Under the pieces are notes generated by a model. That model had not been told where the DNA came from and did no database searches. It was given only the letters and a program-made list of their open reading frames with translations. This document shows, piece after piece, positions 1,011 to 61,848 of a stretch of 64,000 bases of DNA (positions are counted from its first letter, which is position 1; the number at the start of each line of letters is the position of its first letter). The stretch lies in the sequence record MN563784.1, one strand, 5' to 3'. Position numbers and translations under genes: made by a program.

Positions 1011-1032
1011 TGCATTTTTCCTTAAGGGGTAT

Positions 1033-1285
1033 GTAAATATAACTCTAAGTCATAAGATTAGCTAACGAATAAAAATACGCACAGTGCAATGATATAGAGC
1101 AAGGCAGTTTGCGTAAAACGCACTGTACTTTAAGGGGGTGATCCAGTCGTAAATAAACCGGGGTACTAAAGTATCGTCAGGAACGACACGAACCCCAACT
1201 ACGGTGCCTTGCTACTCACCGACCTCTAGATAGGGGTCGGACCTATTACATTAAAGGAGCCCACCAGGGGCTCCTTTATGCCATT
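1033..1285 (+). ncRNA. candidate structured ncRNA with pseudoknot potential
   Basis: TATGTA at 1030, no ORF, helices 1081-87/1120-26, 1098-1106/1205-13, 1160-64/1192-96, 1219-27/1232-40, terminator 1252-1278. Confidence 0.6.
1252..1278. terminator. intrinsic terminator hairpin
   Basis: taaaggagccc/gggctccttta 11-bp stem. Confidence 0.8.
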
Positions 1286-1289
1286 CATT

Positions 1290-1314
1290 ATAAATTAATT
1301 TAAATCTATATTAC
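1290..1314 (+). promoter_or_regulatory. early (virion RNAP-type) promoter
   Basis: aaatcTATATTAC at 1307-1314 with upstream A/T tract; matches the phiKZ early consensus. Confidence 0.75.
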
Positions 1315-1360
1315 AGGATTACCATAAAGATATTTATCCTTTTATAATGAGGAAAAGATT

Positions 1361-1756
1361 ATGTCCGATATTAATAGCACCAATGTAACAGATGAATTAG
1401 TACCTTATTTTCCATCGGCGGATGCCATTACTAGTTCTACTATTAGGGATGAAGTAATTCCTAATATTTTGTTATTCTACAAGAATGCTTTTAGTGACTT
1501 CCAACACGTTAGTAATATCACAGGTACTAACCAGATTGCATCAGGTTATTTACCAGGTGTAGGTTATTATTTCGAGTATAGTGTTACCGGTAATGCTAAT
1601 CTTATTCCACCTGAAGCAATTAAAGTATTACGTAATGTAATCACTAAAAATGGATATAAAGATGACATTACCATCACACCAAAAGGTTTTGGCCTAATCA
1701 ATTGGTTCATTGTGAGAGTATACGTAGATGAGCAAATTAAGAAGACTACTCAATAA
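1361..1756 (+). CDS. hypothetical protein, paralog of 1921 and 35095 ORFs
   Basis: GAGG RBS; shared FPS/IPT N-terminal motif and C-terminal helix-G(Y/W)-strand pattern. Confidence 0.8.
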   Translation: MSDINSTNVTDELVPYFPSADAITSSTIRDEVIPNILLFYKNAFSDFQHVSNITGTNQIASGYLPGVGYYFEYSVTGNANLIPPEAIKVLRNVITKNGYKDDITITPKGFGLINWFIVRVYVDEQIKKTTQ

Positions 1757-1920
1757 AGAATTAGAAAAAGAGTTAGTTAAAAAACTAGATTTTCTAGAAC
1801 GTGATTTTAGAGCTATAAAAGAAGTTATCAAAACTGGAAAATATCCTGATCCTGTTAATCCGAATCGCAGACAAAGTGATTATGATTTATCTTTTAATAA
1901 TTAACCTATAAGAGGATGCT

Positions 1921-2322
1921 ATGGAAATCACATTTCCATCTGTAAAAGAAGTAATGACAACTGATCCAGCATTTATTGATTTGGTTCTGAAAAGTAAATT
2001 ACTTACTATCCGTAAAGCAATGATTGATGTTATTCGAAATATTGAGAATACATCACTAGCATCTAGTAGGCTTGTTAAACAGAAAAGCTATCCATATCAA
2101 ACTACTTTCGAACTTGTATTTAACCCAAAGGTTTTTAAATGGTTTGATAAAACAGATGCTATCAATATTAAAAATATTCTTCATGCTGAAGTAGTTAACC
2201 AGGATTGGGAGAGTATTGATATTTCTTATAATGGTAGGGATATACATGGTTTTGAAAAAGTGACTATTGTATTAACTCCTATGAAAGATGAAGCTATTAA
2301 ATATGATCTTTCAAAAGCATGA
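1921..2322 (+). CDS. hypothetical protein, paralog of 1361 ORF
   Basis: GAGG RBS; followed by terminator. Confidence 0.8.
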   Translation: MEITFPSVKEVMTTDPAFIDLVLKSKLLTIRKAMIDVIRNIENTSLASSRLVKQKSYPYQTTFELVFNPKVFKWFDKTDAINIKNILHAEVVNQDWESIDISYNGRDIHGFEKVTIVLTPMKDEAIKYDLSKA

Positions 2323-2564
2323 ATTAAGATAACATATACCCTCCCCTTTATTGGGGAGGGATTATTTACTTATATGTTTAATAGAATAAGGACTCTACCT
2401 TGGAATAATGCTAATGCTCTTCACCAGAGAAAAGAGATATATAGATAGACGTATTACACATTATCAGGTTGAGTAGTAAATTAAAACAACCAATAATACG
2501 TTATTCAATATTGAAATAGTTGTTATAAAACATTTATATTAATCTAATACAGGAAATAAAGAAA

Positions 2565-3275
2565 ATGGGTGATTATGTATATTTAGAAACTCAAGCTAAA
2601 GTAAATAATGAATGGATTGGTATCGAAGATATTGAACTAACACAGAATTATGATCTTTATGCATATCTACTTGATATTCGCAATTATTGGGATGTAAAAC
2701 CATTTGCTTACCATAATGGTGTTCCTGATGATCTGAAAAAGAAACCAGAATGGTGGAGTAGTTATGATGATGATCCACGCTGTGATGCATGGATTAGTGG
2801 TGAAGCTATTCTAAAAGGTATGAGTGAGCTTAAACCAGTTACTAAAACAGTATATATGAGTCTATATACTTATATGTCCTGGGATCGTATGTCAGAACCA
2901 GATTGCTATTCACGGTATAGCCCACGTCTTGTAACAGATGAACCAAAAATTAATAAAATCTCTCAAAAACAATTACAGTATTATAAGAATTTAACTGAAA
3001 GTTTTTATTCTCTAAACCTTAAAGCTAATTATGATTGGAAGGTTATCGACGGTCGGTTACAACGAGTCGGGCCTAAATGTGGTAAGAATCACCTACGTAA
3101 TCTACGTCGAGTATCGCGTTATCTATCTTTCTGCAATGTTCCTAATGAACCTATCAAAGTAACTTATACACTCACGGCTGATCAACAGCGAAAAGAATTT
3201 AAACCTTTTATTTATCAAGTCCGAAATGCCGTTCTTAAGTACGGTGATATCCGTCTTCTAATGAGGGTTAGATAA
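2565..3275 (+). CDS. conserved phage protein (MG-D-I/V...RNY...G+P-D family)
   Basis: AGGA RBS; NYDLYAYLLDIRN...GVPDDL pattern common in phage hypotheticals. Confidence 0.75.
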   Translation: MGDYVYLETQAKVNNEWIGIEDIELTQNYDLYAYLLDIRNYWDVKPFAYHNGVPDDLKKKPEWWSSYDDDPRCDAWISGEAILKGMSELKPVTKTVYMSLYTYMSWDRMSEPDCYSRYSPRLVTDEPKINKISQKQLQYYKNLTESFYSLNLKANYDWKVIDGRLQRVGPKCGKNHLRNLRRVSRYLSFCNVPNEPIKVTYTLTADQQRKEFKPFIYQVRNAVLKYGDIRLLMRVR

Positions 3276-3928
3276 TGGCAATGACAGCTATTGTCGGTAG
3301 TCGCTATGCCCCTACATGGGCCCTAGAATTGATGATACGCGCAGGAAGAACATTTGTTGATCTAGGTATAGGTATTTCATCAGGCGATGCATATGGATCA
3401 GATAGAGCTGGTTGGTATGGTGCAATTCAGTCTGATAAATGGGATACAGTAGAAAGTCGTATTTACATTATTCGAAATGGATTTCTTGGAAGACGAATTG
3501 AGAATCTAGCGTGGTTTCATGATGCCTCCGTATATACTGATACCATTCCCACAGCTATGGCAATGGCCTGTGCAGCTCGGGGAAGTTTCAATGGTTTAGG
3601 TAGAACAGGTATTGAACTACATACTCGTAATGTATTTCAAATTCATGGCCATACTTTACGTGAACCTGTTTCAACTATTATTGCATACGGTGAACAAAAG
3701 ACACCAACCTCTGTAATTAGTGGTGGTACTAATACAGCGTGGCAGTTGGCATTAGATGCAAATGTGCCAACTATGTATAACCTATACTGGTCCGATGATG
3801 TAAAGAGACTAGAAGAATGGTTAAATAAAAATGAATCTGATGAGCCATATATGCCAATTGATTGGTCTGAAATCTTAGATCCTAGAGATAGCCGTCTACC
3901 TGAATTGATGGATGAATATAATAATTAA
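3275..3928 (+). CDS. DprA/SLOG-like Rossmann-fold protein
   Basis: IVGSR, ISSGDAYGSD, GGT..AWQLA, VPTMYNL motifs. Confidence 0.75.
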   Translation: MAMTAIVGSRYAPTWALELMIRAGRTFVDLGIGISSGDAYGSDRAGWYGAIQSDKWDTVESRIYIIRNGFLGRRIENLAWFHDASVYTDTIPTAMAMACAARGSFNGLGRTGIELHTRNVFQIHGHTLREPVSTIIAYGEQKTPTSVISGGTNTAWQLALDANVPTMYNLYWSDDVKRLEEWLNKNESDEPYMPIDWSEILDPRDSRLPELMDEYNN

Positions 3929-4031
3929 TTTTCTCAAATGAATTAGTTATAATAGCCAAAATAAACCCTCCTCTTAGTAGGAGGGTTTATATCGTCTCAA
4001 ATTAGATTATCAATTAGAAAAGGAACATCAA

Positions 4032-5132: not shown

Positions 5133-5239
5133 GGAAAAGTAAGCTGCTTTTAAACTAGCGAAGAAACATGAATTCCAACGTGTTATTTATAATCCTGATG
5201 ACCTTAAAGTAAAGCATTATTTCACATACGGAGATCAGC

Positions 5240-5842: not shown

Positions 5843-5969
5843 GATTAGTATAAATGGACATTAGTTTATCTCCAGTATGAGTATTCCAACTTCTTAAATA
5901 TTACTAAAGAGCAGACTATGAATATATCAGTGTTTGCTCTTTGGAGGTAATTACTCTGGAGCATCTAAT

Positions 5970-6313: not shown

Positions 6314-6439
6314 ATGGCTAGCGAAAATAATAAATCAGACATGCAACATGAACAAGAAGAACCACCCATATTCAAAATGCTTTTTCTAAGTGCAGTTATA
6401 GGTGGATCATTATGGGAAATAATTAGACAGTGGTTTTAG
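6314..6439 (+). CDS. 41-aa predicted membrane peptide (not in ORF track)
   Basis: MASENNKSDMQHEQEEPPIFKMLFLSAVIGGSLWEIIRQWF; fits operon spacing. Confidence 0.55.
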   Translation: MASENNKSDMQHEQEEPPIFKMLFLSAVIGGSLWEIIRQWF

Positions 6440-9799: not shown

Positions 9800-10030
9800 T
9801 TGAGGATTTATAAAATGTTCAAGCGCGTTATGAGATATATTCGTGTTTTGAAATTAATTGTTATTTTCTATGTTAGGCGACAACTGGGTTTACACGATTA
9901 TTGTACACGAAAAAATACAATTGCATTAGATCGTGAAAATAATAAACGTGTTCAAATAAATGCTATTTCTCGTAAAGTCGAAGAAGCATTATTTAAAGTT
10001 GAACTAGCTGCGATAATGAGTAAGCGGTAA
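9800..10030 (+). CDS. hypothetical protein
   Basis: GAGGA RBS suggests a later ATG near 9814; ends before terminator. Confidence 0.55.
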   Translation: MRIYKMFKRVMRYIRVLKLIVIFYVRRQLGLHDYCTRKNTIALDRENNKRVQINAISRKVEEALFKVELAAIMSKR

Positions 10031-10042
10031 TGTTGTCATAAA

Positions 10043-10087
10043 GCCCTCCCTTCGGGGAGGGCTATTGCACTAAATTTTATTTGAGAT
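10043..10087 (+). repeat. 45-bp terminator+promoter cassette, identical copy at 25162-25206
   Basis: gccctcccttcggggagggctattgcactaaattttatttgagat read at both sites. Confidence 0.92.
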
Positions 10088-10140
10088 CTACATTATAGAT
10101 TAGCATATACTAATGGAAACATCTACATGAGGTAATTATC

Positions 10141-12090: not shown

Positions 12091-12192
12091 ATACAATACT
12101 ATGTAGTAGTATTTCTATTACGTACCTTTCGAGGCATATACTCCATGACTTATGTTGTGGGGTATATGTGTTATAATGTTTAAGAGGTTAAA

Positions 12193-31781: not shown

Positions 31782-31889
31782 ATGCAACTTAGTAATGAAC
31801 TTTTCTATGTGGGTATGGTAGCTGTATCAATGTCAATCGGTATGCTATTTAGCTATATTTATCACACTCATAAGAAAAAATATAAATAA
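31782..31889 (+). CDS. 35-aa membrane peptide (not in ORF track)
   Basis: [35 protein letters not shown]; GAGG RBS; terminator follows. Confidence 0.6.
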
Positions 31890-31992
31890 AGTCATAAACC
31901 CTCTCCCAAAGGAGAGGGCTTTTACATTAAATTTTTTTTGAAATCTATATTACACTAATACAACATTAAACTATTAAATAGGTAATTAAAAA

Positions 31993-50678: not shown

Positions 50679-51092
50679 ATGACTAGTCAACTTATCGTAG
50701 TTGATTTACAAAACCCTAGAAATAAACATATATACAGTGAATTAACTCATGAACACCCTAGAACAATAACATCACATCTAGTTGAAGAATTAGATGATTT
50801 TGATGTTCATCAATATTCATACCAAGCGGAGTATAAATCTGGGATTGATCTTAGATTAATATTCTTTTGGGATGGACCATACACTGAACCAAGAGAAGAA
50901 GGTTACGAACCAACTGATCTAGAGAAAAGGTGTGTGAAGTTGTGTAGGCAATATGAGGCTGCGATTAACGGGCAATTATCTGTAGTTGATCACTCTCGGT
51001 TCCGGACGGTGTGTACCTTCAGATCAGATAATAGTTTACCAACAACTTTAGACTGGATTCATAAAGAACCCCCATCTAAAGAGGTTGTGTAA
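50679..51092 (+). CDS. hypothetical protein
   Basis: ATG at 50679 directly after previous stop preferred to 50568. Confidence 0.7.
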   Translation: MTSQLIVVDLQNPRNKHIYSELTHEHPRTITSHLVEELDDFDVHQYSYQAEYKSGIDLRLIFFWDGPYTEPREEGYEPTDLEKRCVKLCRQYEAAINGQLSVVDHSRFRTVCTFRSDNSLPTTLDWIHKEPPSKEVV

Positions 51093-51121
51093 AAAATAGT
51101 AAAAGAAATACACTATTCTAT

Positions 51122-51210
51122 GTAGTTCCTTTACGATTGCTCTTTTATCTTAGTTTCAGTTTTGCTGAAGAAGTACCAATGAGATACCCTCCCCTGATCG
51201 GGGAGGGTTT
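51122..51210 (+). ncRNA. candidate short late RNA
   Basis: TATGTAG at 51119, no ORF, terminator about 51187-51207. Confidence 0.35.
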
Positions 51211-51233
51211 TTGACATCTAAGAGGAAAATATA

Positions 51234-51614
51234 ATGTGCAAACAACATCGTGTAGTATCTATGAAAGTTACATGCACGCAAGCTCGCTATCCGATCGGTC
51301 TGTGCGATCTCGGATTTGATAATGCTGCTGATGCTCGGCAATATCTACTAGATGTCGTCGAGTACAATATGGATCGTCTCCACCCACAACATGCTAATAC
51401 ATTCCAGCTACAAAATCTACAAGACGGGTTCGTAGTATCCTACGATATCGAAAAAGATGGATCCGTTTATCTTCGGTTAACACTGGCGGCTGTAGCTTAT
51501 CAATCAATCGATCTTGAGTTGGGGGTTACCGTTAAAGAAAATGAAGGGATCAGTGTTGTAATCAAAAATTGGATCAATGGTGATTATACTGCGGGGAACA
51601 AATACTTGCAGTAA
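51234..51614 (+). CDS. hypothetical protein
   Basis: GAGGA RBS. Confidence 0.8.
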   Translation: MCKQHRVVSMKVTCTQARYPIGLCDLGFDNAADARQYLLDVVEYNMDRLHPQHANTFQLQNLQDGFVVSYDIEKDGSVYLRLTLAAVAYQSIDLELGVTVKENEGISVVIKNWINGDYTAGNKYLQ

Positions 51615-51622
51615 TACCATAT

Positions 51623-51742
51623 GTAAAGAATACCCAAATCGGGATCTCCCGGACTATCTCCCTTCAGCGTTCCCGTCCGCAAATGAAGGTGCCGCCGAGA
51701 TCCCACCTATTGATAATGCCCTCCCTTCGGGGAGGGCTTTAT
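51623..51742 (+). ncRNA. candidate GC-rich structured late ncRNA
   Basis: TATGTA at 51620; gggatctc/gagatccc and ccttca/tgaagg helices; terminator 51718-37. Confidence 0.6.
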
Positions 51743-51780
51743 TTCGCTTAAGCCTATTTATTTTATTATAAGGGGTGAAA

Positions 51781-52512
51781 ATGACATATATCGTAAATGA
51801 TGGTAAAGTCATGATTGCAGACTGCCTATTAATTGAGCGGAATAATGCAACTGATAGCATTGGGCGACTTCCAGTATTAGATAACGGTTATATTGATCTA
51901 ACTGCTAAAGCTGAAGGTGTAGATGTATATTACAATGATTGCCACAAGATAATTTTTCATCCGACTGTTACTTGGCAAGGCAAACGTGTTAAAACTATGG
52001 CTTTTGCTGGAACTATAGATAATGTTTATGATCTATTGAATGCCCTTACCGCAGGTGTTGATTTAGCTGATTGGTTTAAAGTTGAAGTAAATATCTTGCC
52101 AGTCATAGAACGCAGGTTGTTTAATGGTAATACTTCTATGATGTTCACTATGGAGAATGGTGACATATATACAGTTATTCTTAAAGACATGGGTATCAAC
52201 ATCACCAAGAAAGATTGGGCTCATTTGGGTAGTGGTGTAGATGCAGTTAATAGTGTACTTGAGTTTATCCCTAATTGTAATGATAATGGATCAACCAAAC
52301 TAACTGCACTTGAAGCATTTGCTATTGCATGTGCACATACTACTACTGTAAGTCGTAAATTTGATTATTACATCCATGCTACAGGTGAGTACAAGCAAAA
52401 TCAAGAACTATCAACTAAACAACTAAAATGGATACTAGCGCGCATTCAAAAGCGGATGGATCTTACCCGCATTTTCAATGACCGCGAATATGCCAATAAC
52501 ATATGGGGTTGA
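51781..52512 (+). CDS. Ntn-hydrolase / proteasome-beta (HslV-like) fold protein
   Basis: M-TYIVNDGKVMIAD (Thr1), AFAG, LGSG, EAFAIA; AAGGGG RBS before ATG 51781. Confidence 0.7.
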   Translation: MTYIVNDGKVMIADCLLIERNNATDSIGRLPVLDNGYIDLTAKAEGVDVYYNDCHKIIFHPTVTWQGKRVKTMAFAGTIDNVYDLLNALTAGVDLADWFKVEVNILPVIERRLFNGNTSMMFTMENGDIYTVILKDMGINITKKDWAHLGSGVDAVNSVLEFIPNCNDNGSTKLTALEAFAIACAHTTTVSRKFDYYIHATGEYKQNQELSTKQLKWILARIQKRMDLTRIFNDREYANNIWG

Positions 52513-52517
52513 TTTGT

Positions 52518-53033
52518 ATGAGTAATTCTAATATGGATATGCTATATTACACTAATGTAAATTGGGAGCAATATTTTCATCATGTGAAACAACGTGCAGA
52601 TGATACTGTTAAAGTAATGTATAAACCTGAATATGAAGATCTTATTGATGAAGCATGTAGGCCATTAATTAAATGGTTTAATCAATTTACCAATGTTGCA
52701 ACTATTTATTGCTGTTCAGGCCATGTTGATGAAGAAACTGGTGGTAGCCCTGGATACATTAGTCTTTTATTTAAAGATACCAATGCAGAGAATTCTGCAA
52801 TGCGTTTATTGCGTGAAGCAATGTGTAAGGGGCGTGAGTGTAAGATCCCATTCGAAATTGAACTGGGGGCTTATTTCGGGCATCTACATGAGACCATTGA
52901 TCAGAATCACTGGGTCGCCAATCTAGTCATCCGCACCAATAGCTACAAACGTAAAAATACGTATGATCGCTATTGGCATCGTCTTTACAATATCATAACA
53001 ACATGTAATACTGAGGGTTTATACACCGTCTAA
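52518..53033 (+). CDS. TYW3-like fold hypothetical protein
   Basis: IDEACRPLIKWFN...TIYCCSGH. Confidence 0.5.
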   Translation: MSNSNMDMLYYTNVNWEQYFHHVKQRADDTVKVMYKPEYEDLIDEACRPLIKWFNQFTNVATIYCCSGHVDEETGGSPGYISLLFKDTNAENSAMRLLREAMCKGRECKIPFEIELGAYFGHLHETIDQNHWVANLVIRTNSYKRKNTYDRYWHRLYNIITTCNTEGLYTV

Positions 53034-53051
53034 AAAATCTGAGATAATTTA

Positions 53052-53201
53052 ATGAATGATATTAAAAATACATTATTAGTTAGATTAGAGAGGAAACAAA
53101 AAGCTAAGCGTATAGATAAATTACAAAGACTAGGTTTATGGTTTATTCTATTGCTATGTGTATCTAATCTATTTGTCCAATTAATAAAAGGTATATTCTA
53201 A
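53052..53201 (+). CDS. 49-aa C-terminal TM peptide (not in ORF track)
   Basis: ...RLGLWFILLLCVSNLFVQLIKGIF; stop abuts next ATG. Confidence 0.55.
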   Translation: MNDIKNTLLVRLERKQKAKRIDKLQRLGLWFILLLCVSNLFVQLIKGIF

Positions 53202-53882
53202 ATGGTAGAAAAGCTCAGTTTTGCTGATATATTTAAGATGGCTAAAGAGGAAAATGTTAAGCTTGAATTGCATTGTCTAATTGGTACTCGACCAGTTAGG
53301 GGTCTTATTAAAAGTTTAAACTTTAATTCAATCAGACCTGATATATGTGAATCTGTTAATTTATATGTAAATGTATTTTCTAAAGTAGTAGAGGCTAGAG
53401 TAGATCTATCAAGTACTACTGCTGATTATGGTTGCTGGAGAATGACGCCAGAAACTAAGAATTATGTAGATAGTAAATATAACTTACCAGAAAAAATTGA
53501 TATCACTAATCCAGATATCGTTAGGAGTAATATTAATTATTACCTCAGTTTACCTACTAAGGAACGCACTGAGTTATTTAATAAAATAAATAATCCTAAT
53601 GTCATTGAGGCAATAAACAAAGAATGGTCTAAAATGGTTGTAGAGTATTATCAATTTGAGATCGATTCGTTTATTGGATTAATTGATTTCGATCATGTCC
53701 TTATCAGTAAGTTCATGGTATTTAACTGGATGGATGATCTGTTTGAATATGCTTTAAATATCCCATTAAAACAAACCAATACAGTAAATGAAGGCACCTG
53801 TTGCTTACTGGTTCACAAAGATAAAAAGGCAACATATACCCATTTTACTGATATTAAAAATCTTATCAAAGTAAGTGTATAA
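53202..53882 (+). CDS. hypothetical protein, last gene of plus-strand block
   Basis: AAGGT RBS. Confidence 0.8.
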   Translation: MVEKLSFADIFKMAKEENVKLELHCLIGTRPVRGLIKSLNFNSIRPDICESVNLYVNVFSKVVEARVDLSSTTADYGCWRMTPETKNYVDSKYNLPEKIDITNPDIVRSNINYYLSLPTKERTELFNKINNPNVIEAINKEWSKMVVEYYQFEIDSFIGLIDFDHVLISKFMVFNWMDDLFEYALNIPLKQTNTVNEGTCCLLVHKDKKATYTHFTDIKNLIKVSV

Positions 53883-53894
53883 TTACGGCATAAA

Positions 53895-53916
53895 CCCCTC
53901 TCCGTATGGAGAGGGG
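53895..53916. terminator. terminator at the convergent strand switch
   Basis: cccctctcc/ggagagggg between convergent ORFs. Confidence 0.85.
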
Positions 53917-53942
53917 ATATGTCTTTATTTTTTTATTTAAAC

Positions 53943-54332
53943 TCACTTAGAAAAATCTTCTACTGGAATATCATCCAGCCAATCATTAAGTAGTTTAAAT
54001 TGATGAGGGTGTTGCATCTTAGTAACTTTACCATACTTAACACTAACTGCTTTACCAGTAGACACGGCAAGATCAACTAGTTTCTTTTCATATGCATTAA
54101 ACTCATCATACCACCGAGTATGAATAAGTTTTGCTAGGCGATCGTAAGCCGTCTTTCGATAATGATCTTCTTGTTCGCGACGCTGTTCGTCAAGTAGTTC
54201 TTTTTGACGTTGTTCTTGCTGACGCTTTTCTTCTTCCTTTTTCTCTTTCTCTAGTCGTTTCTTCTCAGCAAAATATGATAGAACCGGTAGTTTGAAAAGT
54301 AGGCTTAGAAGTAGTTGAAAGAATTGTTTCAT
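53943..54332 (-). CDS. late protein with hydrophobic N-terminus and charged coiled coil
   Basis: GAGG RBS before MKQFF at 54332; TATGTA at 54388-93. Confidence 0.8.
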   Translation of the reverse strand: MKQFFQLLLSLLFKLPVLSYFAEKKRLEKEKKEEEKRQQEQRQKELLDEQRREQEDHYRKTAYDRLAKLIHTRWYDEFNAYEKKLVDLAVSTGKAVSVKYGKVTKMQHPHQFKLLNDWLDDIPVEDFSK

Positions 54333-54412
54333 TAGTATTTCCTCAGTTTGATTAAATAGATAATTTACAAATGGCAATCCGCCTAGTTACATACTAGATA
54401 GCTGTAAGTATT

Positions 54413-54823
54413 TTAATCCGTTACAATGTCTGGATAACGTTCATCAATTAATGATTTTCTATATGCAAACTCACGCACCTCTGCTTCTAATTTTTCTTTA
54501 GTTGCATCTGTAGCACCGATCACAATAATTGAATCATTATTAATTGATAACTCTACGTCATTATCTTTTCCAAATACTAATTTAAAAACAGTATTTAATT
54601 CATCTAATTGATCTTGAACGGTTACTGTATCATCATGGATTGCCCTAGACGGTTCCTCTAATAGACCCTCTAGCACTTTATAAGACTTTATAAAAAGAGT
54701 ATCATTAAAATCTTCTTTTAACCATGTTAATTCAAGTGTATATAAATCAACCACTCTATTAAGATTTGAAGTAGTTATATCTGTTTTCCATTCATAACCT
54801 AGATAGTTAGTTTCATTACTCAT
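54413..54823 (-). CDS. late hypothetical protein
   Basis: AGGAG RBS; TATGTA at 54843-48. Confidence 0.85.
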   Translation of the reverse strand: MSNETNYLGYEWKTDITTSNLNRVVDLYTLELTWLKEDFNDTLFIKSYKVLEGLLEEPSRAIHDDTVTVQDQLDELNTVFKLVFGKDNDVELSINNDSIIVIGATDATKEKLEAEVREFAYRKSLIDERYPDIVTD

Positions 54824-54865
54824 TATAAACTCCTTTGATTAATACATATTAAATAATCTGGAGTA

Positions 54866-55042
54866 TTATTTCTTTGTAATGCGATAACCAACTGACCATA
54901 AATCTATACGGACGAAACCTTTTCCCTCATGTTGACCGTATAAACATACACGTAACATTCTATTACCTGGCTTCATATCAATTCGTGTTACCTCAAATTT
55001 ATTAGTAATGTATTCTTGGATGATAAATAATAGATGACTCAT
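54866..55042 (-). CDS. 58-aa hypothetical protein (not in ORF track)
   Basis: MSHLLFIIQEYITNKFEVTRID...; AGGA RBS. Confidence 0.55.
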   Translation of the reverse strand: MSHLLFIIQEYITNKFEVTRIDMKPGNRMLRVCLYGQHEGKGFVRIDLWSVGYRITKK

Positions 55043-55171
55043 TTTATATTTTCCTGATTAATGACAAACATAAGCCCCTCCATATGGAGGGGCAATATGA
55101 TTTACTGAGTCTTTCGCGTTCAATCCCATCCTAACTAATATATTTAAGAATAGTTTAAACCTCAGTAAATT

Positions 55172-55248
55172 TGGTGCCGCCACTCCGAATCGAACGGAGG
55201 ACCTACGCATTACAAGTGCGTTGCTCTACCTAGCTGAGCTATAGCGGC
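55172..55248 (-). tRNA. tRNA-Thr(UGU)
   Basis: Full cloverleaf, CT-TGT-AA loop, encoded CCA. Confidence 0.96.
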
Positions 55249-55309
55249 GGAATCTTCTACATATAGTGTATATGAAAGTATTATTTTATTTATTATAATA
55301 AATAAAGTT

Positions 55310-55350
55310 ATATTCAAACATATTTAAACAGTATATCATTAACTTGATAT
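55310..55350 (+). promoter_or_regulatory. early-type promoter inside the late block
   Basis: tattcaaacatatttaaacag-TATATCAT, same extended motif as 24748. Confidence 0.6.
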
Positions 55351-55395
55351 TACTAAAAGTAATATTTTCTATTAATTGTAAATAGGATACTAAAT

Positions 55396-55533
55396 ATGAA
55401 TATTGATCCAAAAACTCTTGGCATTATTATTAGCACCACTATTGGCACCGTAGGTGCTCTTATTCTTACGTATGGTATTGCGAGAGCAGTACGTTGGAAT
55501 AATAAACCTGATGTAAAAGATGTAGCAGAGTAA
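55396..55533 (+). CDS. 45-aa single-TM peptide, isolated plus-strand unit (not in ORF track)
   Basis: MNIDPKTLGIIISTTIGTVGALILTYGIARAVRWNNKPDVKDVAE; AGGA RBS; terminator 55544-66. Confidence 0.7.
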   Translation: MNIDPKTLGIIISTTIGTVGALILTYGIARAVRWNNKPDVKDVAE

Positions 55534-55590
55534 GATAACATAAAGCTAGCCCATTAGGGGCTAGCTCTTATATTTATTTTTTTATTTGTT

Positions 55591-56220
55591 TTAACTTAGA
55601 GTACTATAATAAATAAATTTAGTTAATTCATCTTGTTGCTCTTTGATTATATTATTTTTCGTTTGTTTAACATTAATGTAATATTCAATAAATAACCAAC
55701 GTCTATCATGTTTGGCTAAGTCTTTGAATTCAATTTTCTCAAATCGCCATGACTGTACAGTAGTCCTAATGAGATTACCGGATTTATTGATAATATACCC
55801 TTGCATGGTGTTAATTTGATCATCGATAGTAGGCGTTGGTAAAAATATCAAATAAACACCATCTGTATTTTTAGTGTGCATACTTTTTAATTTATACATC
55901 ATTGGGTTAAAGTATTCATCACTTTTATGATAATCGCTTAATTCTAACACAGCATCAATCATCATTTTAGCGCTTTCAGTAACACCAACATTTAGTAAAT
56001 AATCATTAAGCTCTTTTAATGAATTATCTGTAAGTGATGCATCTATGTGTTCTTCACTTATAGGTTCATTATAAACTAGTTTATTAATAGTTGAATTAAC
56101 AATATTTAGCCTATCGATATCATAAACTGCTAGTGTTTGTTTACCAACATTTATTTTTAAGTCTTTACCTGATTCATTGATAAAATCATTTAAATCTACT
56201 TCAGTAAAATGAAAAGCCAT
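55591..56220 (-). CDS. hypothetical protein
   Basis: AAGGTG RBS. Confidence 0.8.
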   Translation of the reverse strand: MAFHFTEVDLNDFINESGKDLKINVGKQTLAVYDIDRLNIVNSTINKLVYNEPISEEHIDASLTDNSLKELNDYLLNVGVTESAKMMIDAVLELSDYHKSDEYFNPMMYKLKSMHTKNTDGVYLIFLPTPTIDDQINTMQGYIINKSGNLIRTTVQSWRFEKIEFKDLAKHDRRWLFIEYYINVKQTKNNIIKEQQDELTKFIYYSTLS

Positions 56221-56691
56221 TTTTATACACCTTTATGTTTTCCGTAGTGTTAAATTTTATTAACACCCGGTTTCAAGTTGAGTTATGTGTAGAACTAATC
56301 TACAAATAATATTAACTCTATGTATAATTTTACTTATAAATAGACCACTCTATATAGAGGGGTATTAAGTCATATAAAGTTATTTTAGTGTGGGTCTAAA
56401 TACAAACATTACGTCTACTTCATCAGTTGGGTCGACATCATATTCTGTCCCAGTATTATCAATCGCAACCAACATTCTCACATTCCTCGGTAAAGGGCTT
56501 TATGTGATTTAGATAGGCAAGTGATAAAATACCTAAATGCACTGAGATATTCTCTGATAAATCCTTTACCTTTATTAAAATTATCACCTACATGGACCAT
56601 TCAATCACTTTTATGTAGCTTGATTTCAATCAATTAAAGGGTATAACGAATGTAATGTATTTATACACGAATATAGTTATCATAAGCTCAA

Positions 56692-56982
56692 CTACTTGGG
56701 GTAAAAGAGTGGACGGAGATCAGTCTCATGGTATTCATCTTTGATATGGGAAAAGTACTTATTGAAATTATCCACACTATACGAAGTTCTAAGCCCATTT
56801 GGCCAAATCACTAACATGTCACCAACTTCGAATGCCGTGATCATAGCCTCAAAGTCTTTTATGTTTACATGATCATTACCAAGTTTCACGAATCGACATG
56901 CACGGAAACCACATTCCCAGTCAGACGACATCCATTGACCAGCCTCAGTAATCAGCTTTGCACGAACTAATGTCTTAGCCAT
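56692..56982 (-). CDS. hypothetical protein
   Basis: Coupled to 56975 ORF. Confidence 0.75.
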   Translation of the reverse strand: MAKTLVRAKLITEAGQWMSSDWECGFRACRFVKLGNDHVNIKDFEAMITAFEVGDMLVIWPNGLRTSYSVDNFNKYFSHIKDEYHETDLRPLFYPK

Positions 56983-57160
56983 ACTTGGTACCCCAGTTTA
57001 TCGTTTTGTCGAGAAGAGCTTGACTAGGTCGTTTATTACGAATCTGATTCTTAATAGACTCATTTAGCTCTTCCATCGTTTTCCGAACTTTAACTAATCG
57101 TTCCTTTTGTTCATTTGTAGGAACACTACTAACTATATCTTGCAATGCTTTAAGTGACAT
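56975..57160 (-). CDS. hypothetical protein
   Basis: AGGG RBS. Confidence 0.7.
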   Translation of the reverse strand: MSLKALQDIVSSVPTNEQKERLVKVRKTMEELNESIKNQIRNKRPSQALLDKTINWGTKYG

Positions 57161-57291
57161 GTCTTTACCCTATTTGTATTCAGCTATAAGATTCAACTAC
57201 TGGGTACTTTTACAAGACGACATAAAGGCAGCATTAGCTGCCTTTATAGTTTACATAGTAGTGAAATATAACTAAATCTAAAACTATGAAT

Positions 57292-57367
<76 letters not shown>

Positions 57368-57528
57368 AGAATTATGGCGATTTTATATTAGAGATGAGTT
57401 ACTGACAACCTAATATAGATATGTAATAACTACATATTATTACAATCTGAGTATTATTTATTTCTTGTTATGACATTATGTAAATAACGTGTAGTTAATC
57501 TTATTAGAAACTATCAAAGTTACTAATT

Positions 57529-58041
57529 CTAACTAAAACGAACCACCATTACCTCTGTACCAAAAGTATCTGCAACCCACTGGTTAAATTCTTTATCAGT
57601 GATACCGCGTAGGTTCAGATTAAATGAGGCATTGTCAACAAGAATATATTTTACAGACGATATTAATTCTTCTTTAATATCTTTTTGAATAGATGATTCC
57701 TCAGGTTGATGAATATATTTACGGAGTTGGTGTGTAATTAAACAAGAAACAATATTATCTTTAGCATTCTGGAACTTAGCCAGTACAGCCTGTTTAATTT
57801 TATCCTCTACAAATACAGCTAGACATTCGCCAGGATGACGATTAGCAAACTCAATCAATGCAGTTGTACTACCACATTGCCGACCTACAAATAATCCAAC
57901 AGTCCTGTATTCACGAATAACAATATGACCAATAGAATTAGATCGATAATTAACCCAGTTCTCATTCGTTTTTTGAATTAAAGCATCTAGGATATCTTGG
58001 TACTTTACAATAGTTCTTACAAACTGATTAGAGTTAGTCAT
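57529..58041 (-). CDS. degenerate P-loop-like protein
   Basis: GRQCGST (Walker A-like) and YILVDNA (Walker B-like); AGGAG RBS. Confidence 0.6.
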   Translation of the reverse strand: MTNSNQFVRTIVKYQDILDALIQKTNENWVNYRSNSIGHIVIREYRTVGLFVGRQCGSTTALIEFANRHPGECLAVFVEDKIKQAVLAKFQNAKDNIVSCLITHQLRKYIHQPEESSIQKDIKEELISSVKYILVDNASFNLNLRGITDKEFNQWVADTFGTEVMVVRFS

Positions 58042-58069
58042 AATAGACTCCTTTATTACAATGTAGCAT

Positions 58070-58273
58070 AGATTCAGTTTTTTAACTGGAATTAAATGCC
58101 GATTTTGAAAAGGTGATAAAACCTTTTCTCATCTATAAATGAATTTATAATAGTAACAATGAATATAACCAGGGGTGGCAAACCCCTGGCATTTAGACAC
58201 ACTCTATAATAAGTTCTACCACCGAGTGTGTTTAGTGGATAGATTTAAGAATACTTTATTATAGTACTCTTAC
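58070..58273 (-). ncRNA. candidate multibranch structured ncRNA (strand tentative)
   Basis: At least six helices, no ORF, TATGTA on minus strand at 58271-76. Confidence 0.55.
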
Positions 58274-58325
58274 ATAATATCATCGTGCCAGTATAATTAT
58301 CTAAATAGTTATAAATATTATTATT

Positions 58326-59333
58326 TTAATCAATGATTAATGGCGCTAGTTTTACCTGATAGATACCTGATAACAATTGGCTTTTCAACATATATGCTCC
58401 ACCACCAACTGGCATTTTAGATCCACCTACAATGATCATGCTATTATCCGGACCTTTAGCTATAGATGAAATATTAAGGAATCCGATACCTAGTTCAAAT
58501 GGTTCAGCCCATTTCCGGCGCCTAATATTAAAACGTTGTGCAAACATTTTAGTTACACCGCCGACATCAACAGCGTTAAGGTAATTAAAATAGTCCCCAT
58601 CTACATAACCATTACCTTGCCAGATTGTTCCTTTATCAGCAGGTATAATCATCCAAGGTGTTTGCTCCCATATTAAGGTAGTTGCATTATATCGATAAAC
58701 TTCAAGATTAGGTATGTTCTTTGTATTATCCCAACCACCAAAATGGTAAAAGTAACCATTATAAAAGAATAACTGTTGACCTGAACGAGCACCACCTGAA
58801 TAATCTTGCCCACTAAGCCATGTCTTACCCGATGGTTTTAACCGCATTGCATTTACCCCAACTGGGTTAACACACATAATAAGATCATTACCATCTGATG
58901 CGGAGGCTGTGCCCCAAAGTGGTACGGGACCACTATATCGCTCAACCCTATTGCCTGTAGCTATATCAAAATGTTGTATAAAGTTAGATGTTCCCGTACC
59001 ACCATTACCAGCCGAGTTCCATCCAGTAATACCGCCATAAACAATAAAGTTATTCTTATGTAATGTCCCAAATCCTAAAGATACCCCTGGTAAGAATGTT
59101 CCAGAAGCAGTTGCACCTATATCGGCAAATGGCGATATGGTAAAACGTCTGAACACAGTTGCAGCTGTTTGTCCTTCAGTATGATGACCAGATCCAACAT
59201 ACAGTGTATTTCCATCCACATATGACATTGTACCAGCTAACGCTACAGGTAGATCACCTAATTTAATAATTTCATTAAATCCAACCAAGGGTAACTCTTC
59301 GCCTATATCTGGCGATAATAGTAATTCAAACAT
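58326..59333 (-). CDS. kelch-like beta-propeller protein, probable virion component
   Basis: Repeated YVGSG / IVYGG / YHFGGW / IIVGG blades; late TATG upstream. Confidence 0.8.
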   Translation of the reverse strand: MFELLLSPDIGEELPLVGFNEIIKLGDLPVALAGTMSYVDGNTLYVGSGHHTEGQTAATVFRRFTISPFADIGATASGTFLPGVSLGFGTLHKNNFIVYGGITGWNSAGNGGTGTSNFIQHFDIATGNRVERYSGPVPLWGTASASDGNDLIMCVNPVGVNAMRLKPSGKTWLSGQDYSGGARSGQQLFFYNGYFYHFGGWDNTKNIPNLEVYRYNATTLIWEQTPWMIIPADKGTIWQGNGYVDGDYFNYLNAVDVGGVTKMFAQRFNIRRRKWAEPFELGIGFLNISSIAKGPDNSMIIVGGSKMPVGGGAYMLKSQLLSGIYQVKLAPLIID

Positions 59334-59417
59334 GAGTGTGCTCTCAAGTAAATCATTTTAATTCATAAGATAACCCATGGCAACATAAAAGAGTAGCCGA
59401 AGCTACTCTTTAGAATA

Positions 59418-59493
<76 letters not shown>

Positions 59494-59499
59494 ATTAAA

Positions 59500-59576
59500 T
59501 GGCGCGCCCAAGGGGACTCGAACCCCTGACCACCCGCGTGACAGGCGGGTATTCTAACCAACTGAACTATGAGCGC
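59500..59576 (-). tRNA. tRNA-Asp(GUC)
   Basis: CT-GTC-AC loop, CCA. Confidence 0.97.
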
Positions 59577-59628
59577 AAACGTATGGACATGACTTCCTAC
59601 ATAGTATTACATAACCAGTAATATTTTA

Positions 59629-59976
59629 TTACGGGCGATCAGTCCAGTGCTTGAAATAGTTACCATCCTTGGGACGATCGTACTTAGCAAGAATATTTTT
59701 AAGTTCTTCGCCGGACAACTTAATACTATCGCCTACTGGGCTATCCAGTTCAGGGCAAGGTTCAGTTTTACGTGTAATGATTAAATTATCAGTCCCATCT
59801 TTGAAGATAAAGATAAACTGCGTTTCATTAGCACTAATCTTTTTCTTAACGCAATGCTTTACTTCTGGATGTTTCTTGTGGATCGCTACAAAAGATTCAA
59901 CAAGAGTTAGCTTTATAAACTCAGGGCTAATAAATGTGAAATATACAGCGCTCTGCGTTGGGGTTAGATGATCCAT
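59629..59976 (-). CDS. hypothetical protein
   Basis: GGAG RBS. Confidence 0.8.
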   Translation of the reverse strand: MDHLTPTQSAVYFTFISPEFIKLTLVESFVAIHKKHPEVKHCVKKKISANETQFIFIFKDGTDNLIITRKTEPCPELDSPVGDSIKLSGEELKNILAKYDRPKDGNYFKHWTDRP

Positions 59977-59978
59977 AT

Positions 59979-60284
59979 TTACTCCGTATGTTTGAGATAG
60001 GCTTTAACTGCTTTAAGACCTTTATTAAAGAACATAGCTTCAACATAAGTAATGTTACTTACATCCTCGCCGATAAGTTCCCATTTGATGCAACGTGTAA
60101 CAGCGTTGATTGTAATATCTAATCCGTTTGGGAATAGGGTTACTTCATCGGTCAGGTGAATCCAATCGGGAGCCTTCGCTCCATTACGTAAACGGGGACT
60201 AAAAGTAAGATTATAAAGTGTTTGTAATGGTTGTCTCAATAGTTCTTTTTGTTCTTGATGTTCCATGTATTTTCCTAGAGACAT
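59979..60284 (-). CDS. hypothetical protein
   Basis: Collinear ORF. Confidence 0.75.
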   Translation of the reverse strand: MSLGKYMEHQEQKELLRQPLQTLYNLTFSPRLRNGAKAPDWIHLTDEVTLFPNGLDITINAVTRCIKWELIGEDVSNITYVEAMFFNKGLKAVKAYLKHTE

Positions 60285-60496
60285 TTAAAAATATAAATAG
60301 AATGGTTATCTCTTTCGGTTATCTTTAGAGTATTCTCATTTCGAATAACTTCAAGAGACTTGTATTTATGTTCCAGAATATCCAGATGAGAAATACACTG
60401 TTCCCTATTTTCAAATAGGATATTACTTTCATTAGTCGAAATGAAACCAAATAATCCAACTTTGATAGATAATACCAACATTATTACTGTATTCAT
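60275..60496 (-). CDS. small exported two-Cys protein, paralog of 18445
   Basis: GAGG RBS before MNTVIML at 60496; FENREQC...IFKCL. Confidence 0.7.
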   Translation of the reverse strand: MNTVIMLVLSIKVGLFGFISTNESNILFENREQCISHLDILEHKYKSLEVIRNENTLKITERDNHSIYIFKCL

Positions 60497-60548
60497 GTTT
60501 TCCTCAATGAGACAGTATAAAACCTCCCCCAAGTGGGAGGCTAGTATA

Positions 60549-60625
60549 TGGTGGGCCCAGCAGGACTTGAACCTGCGACCAAGCGATTATGAGTCGCCTG
60601 CTCTAACCAACTGAGCTATAGGCCC
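60549..60625 (-). tRNA. tRNA with CAU anticodon, Ile2-type body
   Basis: GAGCAGGCGACTCATAATCGCTTGGTCGC core matches recalled enterobacterial ileX rather than Met tRNAs. Confidence 0.85.
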
Positions 60626-60632
60626 TTTTTAT

Positions 60633-60926
60633 TTATTCTGGTAAGAATGTTCCATCTTTTTGACGGACTAATACACCTGACCATTTGAATGTATTTGTAT
60701 CACTAGCAGGGCACTCTCTAATTACATTGGTTCTAAATGTGCCATGTGGATAGGTTACAGTGAATGTAATATGGTTATTACAAACATGTAATACAGAAGA
60801 CTTTGCTTCTGTTAGATAGTGTAAGCCTTGAGCTAATTGAATATTAGTTAATTCAGGGTCACTAAGAATAGCGTAAAGAGCTGTTCCTATAATTTGATGT
60901 TCCCATGATATCCATTTATTATCCAT
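60633..60926 (-). CDS. hypothetical protein
   Basis: AGGA RBS. Confidence 0.75.
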   Translation of the reverse strand: MDNKWISWEHQIIGTALYAILSDPELTNIQLAQGLHYLTEAKSSVLHVCNNHITFTVTYPHGTFRTNVIRECPASDTNTFKWSGVLVRQKDGTFLPE

Positions 60927-60947
60927 CCTATTTACCTATTATTAAAA

Positions 60948-61023
60948 TGGTCGGAGTGGGGAGACTCGAACTCCCGACATCCTGCTCCCAAAGCAGGCGC
61001 GCTACCAACTGCGCTACACTCCG
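60948..61023 (-). tRNA. tRNA-Pro(UGG)
   Basis: TT-TGG-GA loop, CCA. Confidence 0.97.
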
Positions 61024-61032
61024 TATTTAAAT

Positions 61033-61117
61033 TGGTGCCCGAAGTCAGATTCGAACCGACAAGACCGTAGCCGGAAGATTTTAAGTCTTCTGTGTTTACC
61101 AATTTCACCATTCGGGC
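61033..61117 (-). tRNA. tRNA-Leu(UAA)
   Basis: CT-TAA-AA loop, long variable arm, CCA. Confidence 0.96.
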
Positions 61118-61175
61118 ATTGTGCTTCAATACATAACATGTAATGCTAGGTATTTTATTACAACTTATTTTAAAT

Positions 61176-61628
61176 TCAACGTGGCCATTGTAAAGAAGTT
61201 ATCTTATTACCATTAATGTAGACATCGGTCACTTCGCACCAATCATTAATTCTGTGTTCAATAATTGGAACATCATTTCGGCCAGCCACTCCAATCATAT
61301 TCCATTTAACATAAATATTCATTAGATCAATTGTTAATTTCTCTTTTATGAGTTTAGGAGAAATTAATTTAATATTATTAATGTTAAAGAAGTAATTATT
61401 AACTTCTTCTAAATATTCATTAGTATTAGTAGTACTAACTTTGCCTTCATGTTCAAGTGAGGATGGTTTATTCTGATTTACAATATTATTCACTAGACTT
61501 CTTAAAACGGCGCTTGCCCTACCAGCTTCACGTCTTTTATATTTATCATAGTCTTTTACATTAGCTGCAATTTTATCAAATTCTTTTTGGGCATAGATTA
61601 ACCCTGGTAAAAGTTCATTCTTAATCAT
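61176..61628 (-). CDS. late hypothetical protein
   Basis: TATGTA at 61653-58. Confidence 0.8.
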   Translation of the reverse strand: MIKNELLPGLIYAQKEFDKIAANVKDYDKYKRREAGRASAVLRSLVNNIVNQNKPSSLEHEGKVSTTNTNEYLEEVNNYFFNINNIKLISPKLIKEKLTIDLMNIYVKWNMIGVAGRNDVPIIEHRINDWCEVTDVYINGNKITSLQWPR

Positions 61629-61682
61629 TTTATAATTACTCTATGTTATTTGTACATATTTTAACATACTCACGTAAAAACA

Positions 61683-61836
61683 AAATATAAAGCCTCCCCG
61701 AAGGGAGGCGATATATCGTCATTAATGCCCAGCAAAGAGTTTTACTCTCTGGGAGCCAGTTGGAAGGGGGACTGGCTCCGATTTATTATGACTAATGTAG
61801 AAACGAGGGGGAGGGATCATTTCTACATATCATTAC
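61683..61836 (-). ncRNA. candidate late sRNA with C-rich, anti-SD-like loops
   Basis: TATGTA start 61834-39, two 9-bp hairpins with loops UGAUCCCUCCCCCUCG and CCCCCUUCCA, UUCG terminator 61692-61709, no ORF. Confidence 0.7.
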
Positions 61837-61848
61837 ATACTCAGTAAG

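Follow-up and report, generated by a model that had tools for sequence, protein, structure and literature searches.

Candidate promoter-to-terminator small RNA units in a phiKZ-type Pseudomonas phage, and a conserved structured element complementary to the 3' end of 16S rRNA

Small non-coding RNAs (ncRNAs) have already been described in the Pseudomonas phage phiKZ. Gradient profiling by sequencing (Grad-seq) and northern blotting revealed an abundant RNA of ~100 nt between PHIKZ298 and PHIKZ297 (Gerovac 2021, PMC8545117), which was re-annotated by nanopore-based cappable sequencing (ONT-cappable-seq) as 270595-270485(-), with its own start site (Putzeys 2024, PMC10914365). The latter study proposed 17 candidate ncRNAs derived from 5' untranslated regions (5'UTRs), defined by a start site, an intrinsic terminator less than 250 nt downstream and no open reading frame (ORF), and validated by northern blotting a 141-nt RNA upstream of PHIKZ302 and a 71-nt RNA upstream of PHIKZ221 (Putzeys 2024, PMC10914365). 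A 2026 review only states that phiKZ expresses non-coding RNAs of unknown role. Here we have analysed 64,000 nt of sequence record MN563784.1, called the window below, which belong to a phiKZ-type jumbo phage of Pseudomonas aeruginosa (100% identical to vB_PA32_GUMS over the stretches tested, ~99.7% to phiKZ NC_004629) and span the genes PHIKZ203 to about PHIKZ303, tRNA cluster included. A first-pass annotation of this DNA had proposed five structured, ORF-free elements, thought to form a late-promoter-driven RNA layer missed by protein-centred annotation; they are called E1 to E5 in its order (Table 1). Two of them, E4 and E5, are indeed northern-proven small RNAs, but the class of phiKZ start-to-terminator small RNAs, with its 17 candidates, is already published.

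Our preferred reading, to which we give a probability of roughly 0.6, is that the elements are short ORF-free units, each running from a phage promoter to a terminator and making a small RNA, that they form a heterogeneous set, and that E1 is an autonomous gene, conserved in at least four jumbo-phage genera, whose RNA might bind 30S subunits or 16S rRNA and so alter translation initiation during infection. The set consists of two proven small RNAs (E4 and E5), two probable leaders (E2 and E3) and E1, which had been mis-delimited. In such a unit, a promoter for phage RNA polymerase, starting at TATG or TATAG and usually preceded ~17-20 nt upstream by an A-rich stretch and a TACT box, would be followed by an intrinsic terminator ~70-190 nt further on, and the product would be an abundant, stable and structured small RNA.

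E1 is present in a single copy in the window, between PHIKZ203 (-) and PHIKZ204 (+). Its sole long invariant stretch, GGGGGUGAUCCAG (UAAGGGGGUGAUCCAGUCGUA with its flanks in the window), lies between two helices, P2 and P3, and E1 carries a block complementary to the 3' end of Pseudomonas 16S rRNA (Table 1). The sequence of this 16S end was checked by exact search, GGGGAACCTGCGGCTGGATCACCTCCTTA being found in many Pseudomonas genomes. The block and the 16S tail form 21 contiguous pairs (18 Watson-Crick and three G.U), starting from the 3'-terminal base of 16S, and the next-longest run of complementarity to the tail on either strand of the 64 kb is 13. The predicted energy of the E1/16S duplex is -42.6 kcal/mol, compared with -23.6 +/- 3.1 kcal/mol for shuffled E1 sequences (z about -6). 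The other E1 lineages keep 17-19 pairs to the 16S tail, notwithstanding the variation of the flanking sequence. With E2, E3 and E5, the energy of the duplex with the 16S tail was no better than with shuffled sequences; with E4 it was -27.2 kcal/mol, for a gapped duplex that runs through the terminator stem, and one of 200 shuffles was as good. Neither a start codon nor a conserved ORF comes after the E1 block, which is therefore not an ordinary ribosome-binding site. No conserved intramolecular partner of the E1 G-run was found; when the sequences are folded singly, part of it pairs with a different partner in each lineage, and RNAalifold places the block only in a weak, invariant local mini-hairpin.

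A search for a variant of E1 fitting the enterobacterial 16S tail (CCAACC) gave three matches, none of which was homologous. One lies in an unrelated viral contig of high G+C content (1890-1960 of the stretch), where AAAGGGGGTGATCCAACC immediately precedes an ORF that starts with TTG or ATG and would encode a small basic peptide; this site appears to be an extended Shine-Dalgarno sequence and not an E1 homologue.

The structure of E1 was established from manually assigned helices and from a model-based realignment, the indels of a first MAFFT alignment having misled RNAalifold. Manual comparison defines P1 (NCAAG/CUUGN), P2 (GCAG/CUGC, plus a distal stem GCG/CGC, CGC/GCG or GUG/CGC), P3 (GGGGU/ACCCC, GAUAC/GUAUC or GGUAC/GUACC) and P4, which is made of a two-pair helix, P4a, then a hairpin, P4b, mostly with a GNRA tetraloop. 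Compensatory double changes were observed in nine of the 17 manually assigned pairs of P1-P3, almost all cells of the comparison being standard pairs, and five E1 helices are backed by compensatory changes. After covariance-model realignment, 93.7% of the cells pair, compared with 25-48% when the partners are slid; the covariation score is 0.337 compared with 0.191 in shuffles, and none of 500 shuffles reached 0.337. RNAalifold, run on the model-based alignment, independently recovered P1, P2, P3 and P4. Several of the helices contain G.U pairs, which would become A.C mismatches on the other strand; the plus strand is therefore the RNA strand. Covariation, a check proposed in the first-pass annotation, was thus found for E1, and also for hairpin 1 of E4 and for E5 (see below).

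Each element had been proposed to begin at a TATG(TA) motif. TATG is present at E2, E3, E4 and E5, but the TATGTA at 1030 lies outside the conserved E1 unit: SL2, another phage of the genus, has lost it, and it does not occur in Pawinskivirus, PhiPA3 or 201phi2-1, but the RNA that follows is conserved, and the conserved core begins ~65 nt downstream of it. The region 1033-1096 probably serves as a divergent promoter of PHIKZ203, the virion helicase gene, because a minus-strand TATG (1051-1054) lies 41 nt upstream of its start codon. All seven lineages of E1 share one layout upstream of the core: an A-rich stretch, then WTACN and, after a spacer of exactly 13 nt, TATAG. This architecture is of the composite WTACT-N13-TATGT type described below, with TATAG replacing TATG. 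We infer that E1 is transcribed from this promoter, with a start near G1097.

Homologues were taken from an annotated phage collection; searches of viral contigs with the neighbour proteins PHIKZ302 and PHIKZ204 gave a PA7 copy only. The E1 family is present in Phikzvirus, Pawinskivirus (PS119XW, PA1C, HPP-Temi, phiHQ), Miltoncavirus (PhiPA3) and Serwervirus (201phi2-1), and two metagenomic contigs and one IMG/VR contig were found in addition by pattern searches, which brings the family to seven lineages, including four named genera. Every homologue ends in a terminator, each of different sequence. In 201phi2-1 the homologue is flanked by gp304 and gp305, and its 3' end coincides with termination site 229,201, one of the strongest terminators tested in vivo for that phage (PMC11512511). 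In PS119XW, PA1C and phiHQ both neighbours of E1 are on the opposite strand, and in PhiPA3 a gp203 homologue is found downstream of E1, on the same strand. Because the flanking genes differ and because an early-type promoter for PHIKZ204 follows the E1 terminator, E1 is a predicted autonomous gene, for an RNA of about 185 nt (about 1097-1283, +), and not the 5'UTR of PHIKZ204. The Rfam search proposed in the first-pass annotation matched no family to any element: with Rfam 15, the only matches at the gathering score in the window were seven tRNAs, and permissive scans of 980-1380 and 50900-62100 gave no credible match for any of E1 to E5. E1 shares short words with the small SRP RNA and with 6S RNA; both assignments were rejected, as the permissive scan gave no such match. 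A literature search found no report of a cross-genus E1 family, of the E1 fold or of its 16S complementarity.

We propose that E1 folds into a three-way junction that would present the G-rich block, and that the block would pair with the 16S 3' tail, including the anti-Shine-Dalgarno sequence, on 30S subunits or on 16S precursors. The RNA could then compete with weak Shine-Dalgarno sequences of the host, mask the tail or impair maturation of the 16S 3' end. That E1 acts directly on the ribosome and not on mRNAs, and could bias initiation to phage messages, is a tentative proposal to which we give clearly less than even odds.

Several points weigh against our preferred reading. First, the G-run of phiKZ E1 can pair with the ACCCC strand of P3. 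Second, phiKZ genes use Shine-Dalgarno sequences, so that blocking the anti-Shine-Dalgarno sequence would harm the phage too. Third, all known hosts share the same 16S tail, which leaves no phage-host co-variation to compare. To our knowledge, neither E4 nor E5 has a known function. In addition, the TACT box lies in the window at about -17 to -20 from the G of TATG, compared with -22 for the published middle motif, and published work describes E4 and E5 as UTR-derived through premature termination. Finally, the invariance of E1 could instead reflect protein binding or a tertiary contact. Under this last possibility E1 would be functional, but its block would be a site for such a contact or for a protein (phage RNA polymerase, an RNA-export factor and a nucleus-associated RNA-binding protein are candidates), and the match to 16S would be a coincidence. 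The block is indeed invariant even where G.U or other changes would preserve the pairing with rRNA, a small local hairpin can be formed from it by RNAalifold, and the literature that we found reports no ribosome association of phiKZ RNA at the E1 locus. However, a coincidence has to account for 21 contiguous pairs from the exact 16S 3' terminus when the next-best run in the window is 13, for a duplex energy that shuffles never come near, and for the 17-19 pairs left in each lineage by varying flanks; we give this explanation odds only slightly below those of pairing between the E1 block and the 16S tail.

The promoters of the set were compared with the motifs present in the window. TATGTA was counted 34 times on one strand and 29 times on the other, compared with about 42 and 39 expected, and TATG is likewise not enriched. 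Half of the sense-strand TATGTA are intergenic, as are one third of the antisense ones (intergenic DNA is 12% of the sequence). TATG(TA) alone carries little information, its intergenic bias being only moderately stronger on the sense strand. As a motif shared by the elements and the tRNAs, TATGTA is indeed found 12-66 nt upstream of four tRNAs (tRNA-Thr, Asn, Asp and Leu), but the motif that is enriched is the composite WTACT-N13-TATGT, with nine sites compared with 0.9 expected, a number reached by none of 100 shuffles. Of these sites, three belong to E3, E4 and E5, three to tRNA promoters and two to protein genes of the minus-strand cluster, and one (5951) is inside an ORF; the tRNA-Leu promoter is a one-base variant (ATACC). 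According to differential RNA sequencing (dRNA-seq) work, phiKZ middle promoters have an A-rich stretch and TACT upstream of the start, with the box centred at -22, and the late promoter consensus is (-3)TATG(+1) only. The composite motif resembles the published middle-promoter motif. TATG is found at E2 to E5 and at 1030, the A-rich/TACT box being additionally present at E3, E4 and E5, and the conserved E1 promoter has TATAG. Since the promoters of E3, E4, E5 and the tRNAs carry the middle-type box, the late timing attributed to the elements is doubtful for most of the set, as far as promoter sequences can tell.

A third type of motif, a T-rich stretch followed by AAATCTATATTAC, is found 35-54 nt before seven intergenic gene starts, and an eighth site (34631) lies inside a gene of the ORF map. 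The plus-strand sites of the T-rich/(AAATC)TATATTAC type are at 1307, 16833, 24776, 25208, 28282, 31946, 34631 and 45987, and the motif fits the published description of the phiKZ early promoter, used by the virion RNA polymerase. On the minus strand, at 57257-57226, a terminator hairpin comes no more than ~15 nt after a TATGTA, 66 nt upstream of PHIKZ295.1; this unit would yield a transcript of only ~35-40 nt. In the same region, the HNH endonuclease gene PHIKZ296, which adjoins tRNA-Asn in the phiKZ reference, is absent from the phage of the window, in which the gap (57161-57291) is ~130 nt compared with ~850 nt in phiKZ (268710-269556).

Table 1. Positions in the window of the elements, their promoters and associated features, with the published phiKZ RNAs placed on the same coordinates.
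Feature	Position	Strand	Description
TATGTA taken as the E1 start in the first-pass annotation	1030-1035	+	outside the conserved unit; no upstream TAC box
E1 promoter	1071-1097	+	A-rich stretch, ATACG, 13 nt, TATAG; predicted start near G1097
E1 core	1097-1214	+	P1 closing helix, P2 hairpin, single-stranded joiner, P3 and P4 hairpins, conserved AACUACG joiner
16S-complementary block	1131-1151	+	matches the last 21 nt of Pseudomonas 16S; core GGGGGTGATCCAG invariant
E1 3' domain	1215-1283	+	variable; one hairpin, then intrinsic terminator, stem 1255-1275
Early-type PHIKZ204 promoter	1300-1314	+	AAATCTATATTAC after a T-rich stretch, downstream of the E1 terminator
Published 71-nt RNA upstream of PHIKZ221	12103-12173	+	sixth element, absent from the first-pass list
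E2	51122-51212	+	TATG start, U-rich body, terminator 51186-51208, then PHIKZ288 ribosome-binding site
E3	51602-51745	+	composite promoter 51602-51624, start G51623, terminator 51718-51737, then PHIKZ289 ribosome-binding site
Spacer and PHIKZ297 5'UTR	58042-58161	-	variable; 58161-58070 is the second half of the first-pass E4
E4	58162-58294	-	promoter 58294-58272, start G58273, two hairpins, terminator 58189-58169; ~111 nt
Published 270595-270485(-)	58272-58162	-	E4, from the G of TATG to the end of the terminator
Separate TATGTA	61653-61658	-	27 nt upstream of PHIKZ302, downstream of the E5 terminator
E5	61683-61847	-	tandem TATGTA 61839 and 61829; upstream TTACT box; RNA from G61826 to ~61686; terminator 61709-61692
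Published 141-nt RNA upstream of PHIKZ302	61826-61686	-	E5 from the second tandem TATGTA

E4, located between PHIKZ298 and PHIKZ297, corresponds to the published phiKZ transcript 270595-270485(-) within 1 nt. In KTN4 and Wadjak1, a version of E4 is found that is 84% identical, with promoter and terminator unchanged, and in which hairpin 1, which is not the terminator, stays paired through double changes (A-U to G-C and G.U to U-A). Past the terminator, the sequence of these two phages is diverged and has a 25-nt insertion. The corresponding part of the window, 58161-58070, has only a weak fold (z = -2.1) and no conserved counterpart in KTN4 and Wadjak1. Because of this divergence past the terminator, 58161-58070 is not part of the small RNA, and the interval first proposed for E4 overshoots it by ~90 nt. 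In KTN4 and Wadjak1 (positions 9950-10095 and 15177-15322 of the compared stretches, respectively), the diverged spacer is followed by another allele of PHIKZ297, and a recombination boundary appears to lie at the E4 terminator.

E5, located between PHIKZ303 and PHIKZ302, folds into three hairpins, the first with a C/U-rich loop, with a long-range helix around hairpins 2 and 3, then the terminator. In the phiKZ reference the first of its tandem TATGTA is lost and the second is kept. E5 homologues are present in Pawinskivirus (HPP-Temi and BRkr), with the tandem TATGTA promoter intact, and in an RNAalifold analysis of Phikzvirus and Pawinskivirus sequences eight of the 48 consensus pairs show compensatory changes. 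Next to the Pawinskivirus homologue lies a tRNA-Leu with its own promoter-like box, and no PHIKZ302 homologue is found there. As the downstream feature differs in Pawinskivirus and PHIKZ302 has a separate TATGTA, E5 behaves, on this genomic evidence, as a putative autonomous unit and not as the leader of a single gene. It was also observed that the HPP-Temi and BRkr homologues carry a 44-nt insertion with extra CU-rich motifs, UUCCCCUCCUUUC and UUUCUCCUUG (1610-1660 and 1600-1650 of the compared stretches). The sixth element of Table 1, in the 5'UTR of PHIKZ221, was placed by means of the phiKZ annotation and of a TATGTA at 12100.

E2 and E3 lie upstream of PHIKZ288 and PHIKZ289, respectively. 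E2 has no upstream TAC box at the right spacing; within Phikzvirus it is 100% identical in three genomes and 99.3% identical in SL2. The body of E3 is a G+C-rich branched hairpin, and full-length copies of it, with an identity of at least 98.8%, were found in Phikzvirus only. Outside Phikzvirus no homologue of E2 or E3 was found, their terminators alone giving matches there. No promoter motif is present between the terminator of E2 or E3 and the next gene, and PHIKZ288 and PHIKZ289 therefore need read-through. E2 and E3 are most likely leader-terminator units of the attenuator type, with terminators that would be leaky, placed before PHIKZ288 and PHIKZ289.

These observations bear on another explanation of the whole set, in which the short RNAs would be by-products of transcriptional punctuation or leaders acting in cis alone, with no function of their own, and the only regulated step is read-through into PHIKZ288, PHIKZ289, PHIKZ297 and PHIKZ302; the strong terminators would insulate neighbouring units, and promoters would lie upstream by happenstance. 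E2 and E3 fit this explanation, as they stand directly before ribosome-binding sites with no promoter between, and are genus-specific and essentially invariant, with nothing that shows structural selection. Most sense-strand terminators of the window are ordinary gene-end ones, and the published northern blots also show full-length read-through transcripts, the RNAs being called 5'UTR-derived by the authors (PMC10914365). In contrast, the helices of E1 and E5 are kept across genera through compensatory changes, the genes downstream of these two elements vary between phages and a separate promoter follows both, and a hairpin of E4 that is not its terminator covaries. We judge the explanation by read-through alone less probable than our preferred reading. 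The idea that the elements are more than UTRs of the neighbouring mRNAs is borne out for E1 and E5, which appear autonomous, but not for E2 and E3, which are leader-like, and E4 and E5 have been published as UTR-derived, an outcome that the first-pass annotation had listed as a refutation. We retain the reading of a heterogeneous set of promoter-to-terminator units.

Other features of the set agree with its first description. All five intervals are intergenic in the phiKZ annotation, and their folds are more stable than those of dinucleotide shuffles, with z = -4.2 for E1, -3.1 for E2, -4.7 for E3, -5.8 for the 5' half of E4 and -7.0 for E5; the elements are ORF-free and structured, as had been proposed. 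They had also been said, with one exception, to end in strong terminators: an intrinsic terminator of the phiKZ type, a G+C-rich hairpin then UUUAU, is present in all five (Table 1), but that of E4 lies in the middle of the interval first proposed. When sense-strand terminators were scanned across the window, most were ordinary gene-end terminators, 2-40 nt past a stop codon, and the five elements are essentially the cases in which the terminator lies ~100 nt or more beyond the upstream gene. The G+C content of the elements at 51.6 and 61.7 kb is high, as first noted (54% for E3 and 47% for E5, compared with 34.9% for the window), and E5 does have C-rich hairpin loops.

It is very improbable that the elements encode small peptides below the usual ORF thresholds. 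Such genes do exist in the window: two other gaps, at 6314-6439 and 31783-31890 (+), hold ORFs for small hydrophobic proteins of 41 and 35 amino acids, with good ribosome-binding sites and followed by a terminator. In E1 to E5, however, no ORF of at least 10 amino acids has a canonical Shine-Dalgarno sequence at normal spacing, and ORFs of at least eight codons lack a credible ribosome-binding site. A loose purine-motif screen flagged just two ORFs in the elements, of 10 and 15 codons, both TTG-started. The longest ORFs either extend across terminator hairpins or disappear in close relatives, and the phiKZ reference has AUA in place of an AUG located close to the 5' end of E5. The stop-to-terminator gaps at 6.4 kb and 31.8 kb had been considered as candidate RNAs; they were rejected because of these hydrophobic ORFs with good ribosome-binding sites, which look like small membrane-protein genes and fill both gaps.

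The C-rich loops of E5 and E3 suggest another mode of action, in which these RNAs would act in trans on the G-rich Shine-Dalgarno regions of mRNAs or on the G-rich arms of terminators. The E5 loops UCCCUCCCCC and CCCCCUUCCA sit on covarying stems, the CCCUUCC loop is kept in Pawinskivirus, where the insertion adds further CU-rich motifs, and UCCC and CUCC are abundant in E3 and E5. GGGGAGG, the complement of E5 loop 1, is present 14 times in the window (for example at 2353, 21529, 24729, 28234, 38189, 51200 and 51729), mostly in terminator arms. However, when E5 or E3 was matched with a maximal Shine-Dalgarno sequence or with the E1 block, the predicted duplexes did not exceed composition-matched shuffles or made use of the terminator stem. 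In the window, the E5 loops had no specific target close to a start codon, their only matches being terminator arms. We hold such an action in trans to be quite improbable; the resemblance of the C-rich loops of E5 and E3 to the anti-Shine-Dalgarno sequence and to the C-rich arm of terminators is a weak lead. We also considered that the C-rich loops of E5 or E3 might pair with the G-rich E1 block, and rejected this, as the duplexes were at the level of composition-matched shuffles or based on the terminator stem. GGGGAGG is the 3' arm of a conserved phiKZ terminator hairpin, CCCUCCCC...GGGGAGGG, and loop 1 of E5 resembles the 5' arm.

That protein-centred annotation of phiKZ overlooks small RNAs repeats published work and adds little to it. 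The new part is E1, a structured RNA with a putative promoter and a terminator of its own, found in seven lineages, among them four named genera of nucleus-forming Pseudomonas phages. Jumbo phages transcribe their genes inside the phage nucleus and translate them on host ribosomes, and phiKZ reportedly sends proteins to the ribosome within minutes of infection. If our reading is correct, E1 would dock on the anti-Shine-Dalgarno tail and offer the phage a second way, based on RNA, to take over the ribosome, and it gives a testable hypothesis for the favouring of phage messages. In addition, functional genomics can now rely on improved boundaries (about 1097-1283 for E1, 58273-58162 for E4 and 61826-61686 for E5), and the predicted autonomous RNA genes, E1 and E5, are set apart from the probable leaders, E2 and E3.

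Small RNAs of Firmicutes with C-rich loops, such as RsaE/RoxS, pair with the G-rich Shine-Dalgarno regions of mRNAs. E5 and E3 resemble them by C-rich motifs in hairpin or internal loops, but they have neither homology to them nor an Rfam match, and their pairing with Shine-Dalgarno sequences is not above that of shuffles. E2 and E3 share with attenuators and riboswitch leaders a promoter-proximal terminator before a fixed downstream gene; no Rfam aptamer was matched, however, and the genes that follow E1 and E5 vary between phages and are served by separate promoters.

The closest systems are those of the same phages. The published 5'UTR-derived ncRNAs of phiKZ come from the same phage as our elements and have the same ORF-free architecture, from start to terminator, but these papers report conservation within the genus only, and no cross-genus E1 family, fold or 16S complement (PMC10914365, PMC8545117). 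The sRNA005 of 201phi2-1 is an earlier example of a small RNA that is shared by several phiKZ-like genera; it runs from start to terminator, and a conserved secondary structure was proposed for it (PMC11512511). Its locus differs from that of E1, being upstream of gp277, a homologue of phiKZ gp182, of a tail gene family; the same work tested the end of the E1 homologue, 229,201, only as a strong terminator (PMC11512511). The extended Shine-Dalgarno sequences of mRNAs complement the 16S tail as the E1 block, UAAGGGGGUGAUCCAG(U/C)CG, does. Compared with them, the E1 block lies within a non-coding RNA that has its own terminator, with no start codon after the block, and its pairing of 17-21 nt exceeds that of any ribosome-binding site of the window and reaches the last helix of 16S.

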